Assembly: GCA_021613535.1 (NCBI GenBank)
Contig: CP075497.1
Location: forward strand, 11,532,001-11,596,000
Direction: 5' to 3'
Origin: Adineta vaga
Lineage: Eukaryota; Animalia; Rotifera
Length of the DNA: 64,000 bases
The notes under the pieces were generated by a model, which had not been told where the DNA came from, did not search any database, and saw nothing but the letters and a program-made list of their open reading frames with translations. Positions 38,016-42,647 of the stretch are shown one piece after another; positions within the stretch are counted from its first letter, which is position 1, and each line of letters opens with the position of its first letter. The position numbers were made by a program, and so were the translations under genes.

Positions 38016-39384
38016 ATGTGGTGTACAGGACGATCAATTAGACGAAAATCTGAAGCATGTAGCAGCGAAGAAGAAAATGATAATGATGACGATGATGATG
38101 ACACACCCAATGGAAAGAATTCTAGTTCAACCGGTACGTTCTTTTTATTTTAGACATCTCGATAGTTTTGAACAACGTATATTTACTAAGGAGTTATTTA
38201 TATCTCTCGGTAATCGAATAGATAAAAGAAATACCTTTGTTCTTTATTCATACGTGGAGATATTCACCTCTCCTCTAATGCACACATTTCGATCAGCATA
38301 TTTTTACTGGTCCACGAACGACTTAATGGAAAAGAGAAAAAGAAAGGTTACATATGCACTATTCAATATATCATAAAAAAAACATCTAATCTTACTATTT
38401 ACTTTCGTATATCAAAAGAAAAGAAAGTAACAGTAGTTTTTAAAGAAAAGAATTATAACAGGCAGAAGAATTCAATGTTATCAAATGCTATTCTTATGCA
38501 TCACTAACGATAACAAAGATAAAATCAAATAGGAATTAATATGTCCGCTATTTCATCCCATGGATCTAACAAAGGTTAGTCAAAAGTTTATCTTCTATTC
38601 AAAGTAACAATTTTAATGCCTGCAAATAGCGATAGTGTTTCTCCTACAATAATAAGTTATATCAATACGATTTTTTCTCTCAAATAAATTATTAAGTTTG
38701 TTTTTGTATTTAGGAAATGTACATAAAGAAGATCAACGATTACATAATCTCCTTTATCGTAAATCTAAACTTGAAAGTGTCAATGAAACATCCGCATTAC
38801 TTAGTGGTTTTGCTATTGTAAGTTTTTCAAGAAAAATAAATCTATATCTTAGATTTGCTTTTTAGGTAGCGATCGTCGAATTATCATTAGATTCTTATAT
38901 TGAACATAAATCAGGTGATGGTTTGATTATTTGTTATGCAATTGTATCATGTTTACTTGTTGGTATTCATTTACTTGCTTTATTAATGTCAATGTGTATA
39001 TTACCGGAATTGAAAAGTGTCATTCGTCAAAGTGATATGTGGATGAATAATGAAAATACAAAACCATTATCATCATTGAATATTTATATTGAAATAGCAT
39101 GGGTGGTGTCAACGGGTTTAGGTTTATTCTTATTTATCATTGAATTATGTCTTATTTTTTGGATTAAAGTCAGTGGCTTTTCTCAAACAGCAGCTATTGC
39201 TGCTTTAGTCACACTTTGTCTTGTGGGCTGTCCATTTATTCTATTTGCTGTTGGCTTTTACTTTCGTGTTGCAAGAGCGAAAGTTCATTTACATCAAACG
39301 GATTTAGAAATCATCGAACGTGGTGCTATTGCACGTGGAATATTCACGAATACTTCGATAAATCCAACAGAAACTAACCGCTGA
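38016..39384 (+). CDS. Orai: Orai (CRAC channel) paralog 1; candidate first exons 38016-38133 or 38541-38574, then 38714-38817 and 38866-39384
   Basis: [19 protein letters not shown]|VAIVE (TM1), LLVGIHLLALLMSMCILP (TM2), IEIAWVVSTGLGLFLFIIELCLIFWIK (TM3), VGCPF (TM4). Confidence 0.93.
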
Positions 39385-39441
39385 TTAGATTTATATATAA
39401 ATAATAATAAAGTTTTTACAAAAGAAAATAAAAGTTCGAAT

Positions 39442-40626
39442 CTAACGAGATTTCATTGTATTTCTTACTTGTCTTTCATAATTTACTGTTTCTAATACAC
39501 GTGGATTTCTTTCTTCATGAAAACGTTTTTTTGCTAATAATGATTTCCATGATTTGAAACCGTATAATTTCTCTCCTAGATCAGTAAGATGAAATGTCAA
39601 TGGAAGATCTTTTTTTGTTAATGGATATGAACGAATAGCTTCATCAGCAACTGGCGCCATATGAAGATATTGAACGATTCTCATTCGATTTGAATTATTT
39701 GGAAAATTTCCATGAGGTAAACGAGAATCCCAAATAAGTAATGAACCTTTTCGAATTGGCATACGTTGAATATGTTGTCGAATAGGATCATCATTAGGTA
39801 TTTGTACTGTCGTTGGATCTCCACCTTTATTTGTATCGATACATAATTGTTGATTTTGTTTTGTCCATGTTTGAATGAAATGTTGAAAACCAGGAACAGC
39901 ATGAAAACCACCATCTTCTTCTCGACAATCAACTAATGCTAAGATGCCTTGTAATTTTCTTCGAAGCATTCCATTATTGGTTGGTTTTGTTTGTGCAGTT
40001 AAGGGATCTGATGAACTATCAAAATGACTTTCTGCTACACTTTCAAAGCCAAATGTAGTCGCTCGACCTGTCAATGGATTCATATCAAGATGAAGCCATT
40101 CAGACATCGTTTTCCATTCATCACGATCTTCTGTTCTATCAATCGAAGGAAAATAGATATTTTTTGTTGGTCGCATTAAACCAGCTCGAGTTATATTGAC
40201 AATTAATTCATCTTCACCTAATAGTGTTCGAAATACTTGATAAATATTGACATTCTGACGATTGTCACAAGCTTGTGGATATAACCAACGTTGATTTCCA
40301 AGAATTCCAAATTTTGAAAAACTAGGCCATCCATTACTCCAACTTTCTGGTTTATCTGCTTCAATTTCTTCATTAAACATTTCACGTAAAAACAGCCATA
40401 CTTCATCGACACTACGTTGACATTGTTCATCCGTTAAAACATTTGATACAACGACAGCACCATGTTTTTCAAAAAATGCTAAGATTTCATCTTGTTGTTC
40501 AACTGTAAAACTGATAATAAACCCATCTGAGTCAACAGGAAGATCTGGTTGAAATATTTCATCATTACCATCAGATATATTTATGTTCGATGGTTTTATT
40601 TCAGTATTACTCTCCGAATTGCCCAT
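39442..40626 (-). CDS. PhyH-like Fe(II)/2-oxoglutarate dioxygenase, intronless (about 394 aa from the ATG at 40626)
   Basis: FFEKHGAVVV, WLHLDMNP (HxD), LQGILALVD...DGGFHAVPG, GSLLIWDSRLPHGNFPN..RIVQY (distal His and Arg); MGNSES N-terminus. Confidence 0.88.
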   Translation of the reverse strand: MGNSESNTEIKPSNINISDGNDEIFQPDLPVDSDGFIISFTVEQQDEILAFFEKHGAVVVSNVLTDEQCQRSVDEVWLFLREMFNEEIEADKPESWSNGWPSFSKFGILGNQRWLYPQACDNRQNVNIYQVFRTLLGEDELIVNITRAGLMRPTKNIYFPSIDRTEDRDEWKTMSEWLHLDMNPLTGRATTFGFESVAESHFDSSSDPLTAQTKPTNNGMLRRKLQGILALVDCREEDGGFHAVPGFQHFIQTWTKQNQQLCIDTNKGGDPTTVQIPNDDPIRQHIQRMPIRKGSLLIWDSRLPHGNFPNNSNRMRIVQYLHMAPVADEAIRSYPLTKKDLPLTFHLTDLGEKLYGFKSWKSLLAKKRFHEERNPRVLETVNYERQVRNTMKSR

Positions 40627-41793
40627 ATCAGTTAATAGCACAATAAAAAGTTCTATATTTGAATAGCAAAAATGCGAATATCCTCTATATAGTACAGATA
40701 TGACTCATCAATATGTGATGTCACTATATCCAACGTGGAAAATATGAATCATATTTCTATTTACTCATTGCGCTACTATTTATATAAATCGATCATTACT
40801 TCTTACATATAATTAGACGATTGTCAGAAAGATCCTTGAGCATAACAGGCATGTATAGCAGAAGAATTTTCGTAATTCGTATAGATAGTGATGATATTTG
40901 ATCAATATTACAGTATGCATATGTAGAGCAATCGATTCCATTTTCTAACTGAGATTATAAACAATTCGATCTATTTTTACTTTTAAAACATAAAAAACAA
41001 ATAAACTTATTGCTCATTTACATAGGTATATATGTTACGAGGCAGAATGACCTATTATTTCATATGTTAATATCGTATAAAAGCCATTCTATACATAATC
41101 TACGTCTATAATTTAATGACGCCAATTTTATATCGACTCCCTCTAAGAAACAGAATAATGAAGTGTATCCTTGAGTGGAAATCATCTTCAAGGTTATATA
41201 AAAGAAGTTTTCATTCACTTTGACAAGTCTAGAGGAAAAAAGGTTTGCATTAATATATAACTTCTTATTGTCAAGTGCATATTGTCCGTTGAGTTCTGAA
41301 TTGTTCACACTTACAAATAGTGACCTTTAAAATAGATCTTAATTATTCAATTTCTTTTTTTTTCTTCTTTCTCTATGAAATCATCGAAATATCGAAGTAA
41401 AGTATTGGACAATTTAATATATACCTTGCTTCTTTACTTGAAAAGAAAAGAAATGAAGGATATAATTTACGAAATATTCGACTTTTCAATTGTGCCCAAG
41501 GAAATGTGTCCTTCGAAAATCTCAAGGCAATATTTGAATACAATATTGAAATGGTAAAAGAATTGATTGACAATGAACATCATTTTCGCAGAAAAATAAG
41601 ATTTAGTCTCAAGTTATCATTAACCTCATTCAACTTTTCAATTCATCTTTCATTCGATTAGCTTGATAATATTTCCTATAGAGAACTATGAAATCATATT
41701 TAAATGTCATGTTATTTCGATAATAAACATATGTGCTAAAAAGAAAAGATTATTTAAAGCTATTCTATTATTTAATCAACACAAAAAGTAAAG

Positions 41794-42647
41794 ATGTCTG
41801 ATGCTTCATTGTATGTTTCGAATACCGGTGCGTAGAAATGATTGATATAAAGATAGATATTATACCATCATTACTTAACAAAGGTGCTCATTAGATGCCA
41901 GAAAAAATATTCGAAAGTTCATACAAACTTTTCGAGAAATGTCTCTGTTGATATTTAGGAAAAGCACATCAAGATGATCAACGATTACATAATCTTTTCT
42001 ATCGTAAATCAAAGCTCGAAAGTGTCAATGAAACATCTGCATTACTCAGTGGTTTTGCTATTGTATGTTTATATAAACAAAGCAAATTCTATTTATTATT
42101 TCTATTTCTTTAGGTAGCAATTGTTGAATTATCACTTGATGCCTATACAAGTCATAATGCCGGTGATACACTTTTGATATGTTATACGATTGTATCATGT
42201 TTACTTGTTGGTGTTCATTTACTTGCTCTATTGATGTCAATGTGTATTCTACCGGAATTAAAAAATGTCATTCGTGATACAAATTCTTGGATAAGAGATG
42301 AAAATAAAAAACCTCTTTCATCATTTGGTATGTGGATTGAAGTAGCATGGATAGTTTCAACGGGTTTAGGATTATTTTTGTTTATACTTGAACTTGGTTT
42401 GATCTTATGGATTAAAGTTAGTGGATATTCACTTACGGCAGCAATATCGGCGATTGTGACACTTTGTCTTGTCGGTTGTCCATTTATATTATTTTCCGTT
42501 GTATTATATATTCGTTTAGCAAGAACAAAAATCTATTTACATCAAACGGATTTAGAAATCATCGAACGTGGTGCTATTGCACGTGGTATATTCGCTAAAC
42601 AATCACCACCTGTTATTGCCATGGCCAATCTTGAAACTATTTCTTAA
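41794..42647 (+). CDS. Orai: Orai (CRAC channel) paralog 2; exons 41794-41827, 41959-42062, 42114-42647
   Basis: Same motifs and intron positions as paralog 1. Confidence 0.93.

Follow-up and report, generated by a model that had tools for sequence, protein, structure and literature searches.

A bdelloid-rotifer Orai subfamily with glutamates in the inner pore and a reversed charge at residue 149

The basic inner pore of Orai proteins (R83, K87 and R91 in human ORAI1, the numbering used throughout) is regarded as a hallmark of CRAC (calcium release-activated calcium) channels, and the R91W substitution leads to human immunodeficiency. Here we analyze a tandem pair of three-exon Orai genes (copies 1 and 2) located at 38016–42647 on the plus strand of a 64,000-nucleotide stretch of chromosome 6 of the rotifer Adineta vaga (GenBank assembly GCA_021613535.1, contig CP075497.1, positions 11,532,001–11,596,000; hereafter the window). 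Both genes carry glutamate at the K87 and R91 sites, and they are members of a bdelloid-rotifer Orai subfamily in which residue 149 is also reversed in charge. This charge-reversed clade belongs to the known Orai channel family and is not a new kind of system.

Engineered forms of human ORAI1 address the same positions. The R91D and R91E channels are gated normally by STIM1 and do not open without it, and a role proposed for the basic residues is to favour hydration at the outer gate (PMC7034092). In an alternative model, they recruit anions that assist Ca2+ permeation (PMC6497303), and a 2026 review regards the mechanism of the basic region, be it an anion plug, residue rotation or hydration, as unconfirmed. 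On the cytosolic side, ORAI1 contains the "cytosolic triangles" K85–E149–E173 and R83–E149–E173; E149K alone abolishes function and, in linked dimers, silences the neighbouring subunit, and the R83E/E149K double swap restores function (PMC7948504). In the fourth transmembrane helix (TM4), human P245L and fly P288L are constitutively active (PMC6497303). The C-terminal helix of human ORAI1 is STIM-binding.

In both copies, the two glutamates are encoded by GAA, at 38773–38775 (K87 site) and 38785–38787 (R91 site) in copy 1, and at 42018–42020 and 42030–42032, respectively, in copy 2, and the protein sequence of the first transmembrane helix (TM1) is identical in the two. The HMMER alignment between the copy 2 product, represented by the public protein P0047, and Drosophila Orai is gap-free over TM1, which excludes a register shift that would remove the substitutions, and reads R155>K, K157>K, K159>E and K163>E. 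With the fly–human equivalences of the literature (F171=F99, K163=R91 and P288=P245; PMC6497303 and the 2026 review), these correspond to R83K, K85 kept, K87E and R91E in human ORAI1. Of the three residues of the basic inner pore, only that at position 83 therefore stays basic, as lysine, and positions 87 and 91 are Glu. The equivalents of E106, V102, F99, G98, H134 and E190 are kept, and E106, V102, F99 and Gly98 are invariant in all 20 clade sequences compared. A preliminary description made from the DNA letters had placed the four Glu codons, the three substitutions and the kept E106, V102, F99, H134 and E190 equivalents in the same way, and our alignments agree with it on each. It had also listed P245 as kept, which does not hold: in the clade the P245 column is L, I or F in 19 of 20 sequences and never Pro, as compared with Pro in 39 of 44 canonical sequences, and the TM4 proline of all 20 lies four residues, or one helical turn, further on.

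The residue comparison between the 20 clade sequences and 44 canonical Orai sequences places the two glutamates within a larger set of changes. Y81, R82, E87, E147 and K149 are invariant in the clade, and E91 is present in 19 of 20, the remaining sequence having Gln. The clade-invariant non-conservative changes (L81Y, S82R, K87E, A88S and R91E) are concentrated at the cytosolic end of the pore. By comparison, position 87 is lysine in 41 of the 44 canonical sequences. Position 149 is Lys throughout the clade and Glu or Asp in every canonical sequence, and position 147 is Glu throughout the clade and acidic in none of the canonical proteins. Of the salt-bridge triangle K85–E149–E173, K85 and E173 are kept and the residue at 149 is lysine. 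The mean net charge of the 19-residue N-terminal segment is +1.1 in the clade and +5.3 in canonical Orai. In the C-terminal helix, the L273 column is Leu in 20/20 clade sequences and the L276 column is I, V, L or M, as judged by alignment. In copy 1, the second exon encodes Arg82, Lys83, Lys85, Glu87 and Glu91, and the third exon encodes Glu147 (39007–39009) and Lys149 (39013–39015); in copy 2, the third exon encodes Glu147 (42255–42257), Lys149 (42261–42263) and the shifted TM4 proline (42480–42482). By this comparison E149K, N147E and S82R are coupled changes, and the preliminary description had overlooked them.

The occurrence of Glu87 together with a non-acidic residue 149 extends beyond the bdelloids. 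We searched 1.84 billion representatives of 50% identity clusters with HMMER and obtained 391 Orai hits; the counts that follow refer to the best 150 of these. All five representatives with Glu87 lack an acidic residue at 149, as compared with 1 of 80 representatives with another residue at position 87. The sole non-bdelloid Glu87 case is a mayfly double-Orai protein, in which residue 149 is Ser or Arg. The putative covariation thus involves two independent lineages and is suggestive rather than statistical.

We considered whether acidic residues are common at these sites in invertebrate Orai, and the counts reject this. In the 82 non-clade representatives that include TM1, position 87 is basic (K or R) in 78, with two cases of Q and one each of A and E, the E being that of the mayfly. 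At position 91, 54 have R or K and 14, an aphid paralogue group, have Thr; the remainder have a small or polar residue (S, N, Q, G, A or H), and none of the 82 has Glu or Asp. The clade is also set apart by overall identity, its members having at least 53% and all other hits at most 46%. An aphid group annotated as "CRAC channel protein 1-like" (P0249, P0217 and relatives) has Thr at the R91 site and Glu at the A94 site.

The 110 close homologues for which a source name is given all come from bdelloids (Adineta, Rotaria and Didymodactylos). Those that include TM1 all have Glu87, and all but two have Glu91, the exceptions being Gln in one R. sordida protein and another residue in one mis-modelled, frame-shifted prediction. 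Seison, a non-bdelloid rotifer, has a canonical TM1, and canonical Orai genes are also present in Adineta and Rotaria. The restriction to bdelloids leaves monogononts aside, as the presence of their genomes in the searched database is unconfirmed. A word-based search with the TM1 region, a method unsuited to distant Orai, returned only bdelloids and one weak match. Six short R. sordida relatives of the clade (P0149 and P0258–P0262; 93–128 aa) have Ala87, Glu91, Thr149 and a changed Gly hinge motif; these copies may be in decay or may have been mis-modelled.

In two quick trees, the charge-reversed clade is monophyletic with Shimodaira–Hasegawa-like approximate likelihood ratio test (SH-aLRT) values of 96 and 100, on a long stem of 1.75–2.5 changes per site. 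It groups weakly (SH-aLRT 88) with the canonical bdelloid Orai, Seison and one further Orai group. The clade contains four subclades, of which at least three have both Adineta and Rotaria members, and because subclades hold both genera, the tandem pair predates the Adineta–Rotaria split. These trees are consistent with the clade having arisen by duplication within the rotifer lineage, changed rapidly and stayed almost unchanged since, an order that is unproven.

In the A. vaga genome, a six-frame search with the Pfam Orai-1 profile (PF07856) identifies six Orai loci. The Glu/Glu TM1 is found at four of them, namely the window pair, chromosome 3 at 5.49 Mb and chromosome 6 at 2.53 Mb, and canonical K87 and R91 are found at the other two, on chromosomes 2 and 5. 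The chromosome 3 charge-reversed locus lies in a block collinear with window 27–47 kb and has a single Orai gene. STIM is encoded at three loci, one on chromosome 1 at 2.89 Mb (L011) and two on chromosome 4 at 11.457 and 11.462 Mb (L012 and L013); one STIM locus examined by domain has the STIM EF-hand (E 2.9e-13), SAM and SOAR. The natural acidic-pore subfamily proposed in the preliminary description is thus borne out by four A. vaga genes and by conservation across Adineta, Rotaria and Didymodactylos, and the canonical Orai and STIM genes for which it recommended a search are present in the same genome. The two chromosome 4 STIM loci are about 5 kb apart on opposite strands. For the chromosome 2-type canonical Orai, one Adineta protein and one Rotaria protein share 89% identity. 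Its canonical counterpart on chromosome 5 (about 13.84 Mb; L006/L007/L009; P0265) has Gln at the TM3 Glu190 equivalent and evolves faster, with 61–73% identity to its closest matches in other bdelloids; its annotated isoform P0264 reads into an intron.

The exons of the two window genes are as follows.

38016..38133, plus strand: copy 1 exon 1a, the upstream first exon, with 39 codons and one base, encoding an acidic poly-Asp stretch
38541..38574, plus strand: copy 1 exon 1b, a short alternative first exon of 34 nt, placed by homology to exon 1 of other paralogues
38714..38817, plus strand: copy 1 exon 2, encoding the cytosolic extension and the first part of TM1
38866..39384, plus strand: copy 1 exon 3, encoding the end of TM1 with the selectivity-filter Glu, TM2–TM4 and the C-terminal helix, with the stop codon
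41794..41827, plus strand: copy 2 exon 1 (34 nt), placed by the 223-aa length match to P0047 and by the end of a contig from run X12
41959..42062, plus strand: copy 2 exon 2, which holds Glu87 and Glu91
42114..42647, plus strand: copy 2 exon 3, stop codon included, with 100% identity to residues 47–223 of P0047

TM1 is interrupted by a phase-0 GT..AG intron in both genes (38818–38865 in copy 1 and 42063–42113 in copy 2). The third-exon products, which are 74% identical to each other, match PF07856 with E 3.6e-29 and 102.1 bits (copy 1) and E 1.7e-27 and 96.7 bits (copy 2), as compared with a curated threshold of 25 bits; the second exons score 19.8 and 19.4 bits over the part of the profile that adjoins that of the third exons. 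The three-exon model of copy 2 has exactly the length of P0047 (I4U23_030911, A. vaga, 223 aa), and this public protein was used for full-length analyses. Copy 1 was searched exon by exon; none of the homologues returned matches it at 100%, and it may be unannotated or differently modelled in the public annotation. Copy 1 appears to have two alternative first exons. Exon 1a gives a long isoform of about 246 aa with an acidic N-terminus, and this N-terminus is shared with A. steineri P0003 and P0004. It has a conserved start followed by an Asp/Glu run, and the start is also found in the most divergent charge-reversed subclade (P0113 and P0067). Exon 1b has the length and phase of copy 2 exon 1, is homologous also to exon 1 of the chromosome 3 paralogue, and has a start resembling those of P0047, P0014 and P0007.

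Both genes are transcribed and spliced. The joint 38817>38866, with GT..AG borders, is present in RNA-derived contigs of three runs from three studies, and the joint 42062>42114 in an RNA-derived contig of one run (X12). By comparison, a DNA run covers the whole stretch, and the exon joints are absent from it. At 41958, the unplaced letters of a run X12 contig are the end of copy 2 exon 1, so that this exon is joined to exon 2; likewise, a run X1 contig ending at 38713 carries 30 unplaced letters that are the last bases of exon 1a, which is thus joined to copy 1 exon 2. No joint of exon 1b was seen in the RNA-derived contigs. Between the two copies, the 21 TM1 codons differ by five synonymous and no non-synonymous changes. 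Over exon 3, the non-synonymous divergence (dN) is 0.18 and the synonymous divergence (dS) 0.68, and the introns and flanks are about 60% alike. The preliminary description had argued from two intact copies that neither a sequencing error nor a pseudogene was involved, and the spliced RNA, the independent DNA run and the TM1 codons support it. A chance origin of the Glu/Glu pair was considered and rejected, given the absence of non-synonymous TM1 changes and the presence of both Glu codons in all four genomic paralogues.

Between the Orai copies, an intronless 399-aa frame on the minus strand (39445–40641) encodes a PhyH (phytanoyl-CoA dioxygenase) domain (E 1.9e-10). The frame and copy 1 are convergent, their stop codons being only 57 nt apart, and the frame is covered by RNA-derived contigs, one of which spans both the PhyH gene and copy 1. 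Since the collinear chromosome 3 block has no PhyH counterpart, the gene was inserted in the window or lost on chromosome 3.

We give an even chance to the charge-reversed proteins forming functional Orai channels of a type of their own, in which the rewired charges compensate one another and coupling to STIM is probably maintained. In such channels K87E, R91E, E149K, 147Glu, 82Arg, 81Tyr and the shifted TM4 proline would compensate one another to give working hexameric cation channels, with the usual filter and gate and with an inner pore that would carry fixed negative charge where canonical Orai has anion-binding positive side chains. The clade keeps the outer pore (filter Glu, Val/Phe gate and Gly hinge) as well as Lys85, Glu173 and the hydrophobic C-terminal helix positions. 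Because K85 and these hydrophobic positions are kept and STIM genes are present, gating would probably still be by STIM. Because the canonical residue 149 contacts TM1 of the neighbouring subunit, the reversed TM1/TM2 charge pairing may make mixed assemblies with canonical subunits unfavourable, leaving two separate Orai channel types. Compared with the engineered channels, the clade combines two types of substitution, each of which impairs human ORAI1, and their direction is that of the R83E/E149K rescue. The predicted structure agrees with an Orai fold: the AlphaFold2 model has helices at 14–51, 61–100, 114–149 and 153–207, including a long TM1 and the TM4 extension, and its top 11 Foldseek matches are all Drosophila Orai, with a best TM-score of 0.89.

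Several points weigh against a compensated, working channel. In human ORAI1, each further change from a basic residue to Glu costs more function (PMC7034092), and even P245L, although constitutively active, loses function when basic residues are removed (PMC6497303). As such mutants lose function, a silent or inhibitory subunit is possible. The published partners of E149 are K85 and R83, not K87 (PMC7948504), and in fly Orai structures the R83–E149 distance is about 14 Å (2026 review). The putative Glu87–Lys149 pairing derives from covariation in only two independent lineages, and the structural model is a monomer with a mean predicted local distance difference test (pLDDT) score of 76. A fuller version of the working-channel proposal, which we advance tentatively and with some doubt, is that bdelloids have two electrostatically separate Orai systems. 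Here the carboxylates at 87 and 91 would replace the mobile anions recruited by canonical channels, a reversed pair (Glu87 or Glu147 with Lys149, Arg82 or Lys85) would restore gating and block productive mixing, and one duplicated STIM gene may serve the second system.

A modulatory or dominant-negative subunit is an unlikely alternative, though one with several observations on its side. In this case, the charge-reversed protein would co-assemble with canonical bdelloid Orai, and its Glu rings and Lys149 would modulate or close the resulting mixed channel, for instance through bridges to adjacent Lys or Arg side chains or through disruption of the K85–E149 contact. TM1 residues 92–106 and most helix-packing positions are nearly identical to those of canonical Orai, so that mixed assembly is sterically plausible, and Adineta and Rotaria, the bdelloid genera sampled for the two Orai types, each have both. 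The silencing of neighbours by E149K in human linked dimers, and the loss of function in double Glu mutants, point the same way. However, for a pure inhibitor the retention across genera of four paralogues with an invariant filter, gate and C-terminal helix would be surprising, and the coordinated swaps resemble a restored internal pairing more than a breakage.

Quite unlikely, in our judgment, is a STIM-independent channel or one with another role, in which the anion-binding basic gate is lost and the TM4 proline moved, giving constitutive or other gating or a place in an internal membrane. Thirteen of the 20 clade sequences have Leu in the P245 column, as do the human P245L and fly P288L mutants, which are constitutively active; yet a proline follows one turn later in all 20, so the TM4 kink may persist, and human ORAI1 with R91 neutralised or reversed stays closed without STIM1. 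The altered nexus motif and the altered conserved loop-2 His would suit a loss of STIM coupling, against which stand the kept K85 and C-terminal hydrophobic positions. W76 is not kept in the clade either, but since canonical bdelloid Orai also lacks it, this loss is not clade-specific. The bdelloid genomes are anciently tetraploid and duplicate-rich, and the short derived R. sordida copies have further TM1 changes, as would suit duplicates that are decaying or neutral, or an artefact of assembly or annotation. That explanation is extremely improbable, and the data contradict it: neither reading frame is broken, the RNA is spliced, TM1 has no non-synonymous against five synonymous differences, four paralogues and three genera carry the same residues, and an independent DNA run spans the region.

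Laboratory charge reversals mostly destroy function, and evolution has fixed a charge-reversed version together with the E149 reversal across bdelloid genera. The fixed set points to specific compensating residues, and placing these in human or fly Orai would allow the competing models to be tested. One animal keeps two distinct Orai pore types beside STIM, and the occurrence of ordinary and charge-reversed Orai in the same animals offers a natural test of what the positive inner-pore region does. If the proposal of two electrostatically separate systems is true, the clade would serve as a natural mutant from which to understand what the basic region does, be it as anion plug, in anion-assisted permeation or in pore hydration. 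Our literature search found nothing on Orai in bdelloids, and the works naming both Orai and rotifers are not about rotifer Orai genes.

Our comparison with known systems reveals that the clade shares with Drosophila Orai (PDB 4HKR, 6BBF and 7KR5) and human ORAI1 the Pfam family, the four-helix fold and a gap-free TM1, together with the filter Glu, Val/Phe gate, Gly hinge, TM2 His, TM3 Glu190, Lys85 and Glu173, at about 33–38% identity; the short extracellular loop 3 resembles that of fly Orai. Unlike either, the clade has Glu87, Glu91, Lys149, Glu147, Arg82, Tyr81 and the TM4 proline four residues later, as well as M101 and M104 changed to Ile, F199 to Val and the loop-2 His to Leu. The canonical bdelloid Orai (A. 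vaga chromosomes 2 and 5; P0265, P0294 and relatives) have the same TM1 intron position, a short N-terminus and a similar C-terminal motif, and differ from the clade in having K87, R91, E149 and an in-register TM4 proline. The clade is 41–44% identical to them and 35% identical to a mollusc (Aplysia) Orai, to which the canonical bdelloid proteins are 46–55% identical.

The mayfly protein (Ephemera danica P0244) resembles the clade in having Glu87 in both halves and a non-acidic residue (Ser or Arg) at 149. By contrast, it is a predicted protein of 443 aa with two Orai domains, has Ala or Cys at residue 91 and Asn for the TM2 His, and lacks E173. The engineered human ORAI1 variants (R91D/E, multiple Glu, E149K and R83E/E149K) carry the same kinds of substitution at the same positions. 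Unlike them, the natural proteins combine K87E, R91E, E149K, N147E and S82R with Lys83 kept, a combination for which we found no built or tested mutant in the literature. The R83E/E149K rescue is an experimental precedent for what the clade shows naturally, an acidic TM1 paired with a basic residue at 149.

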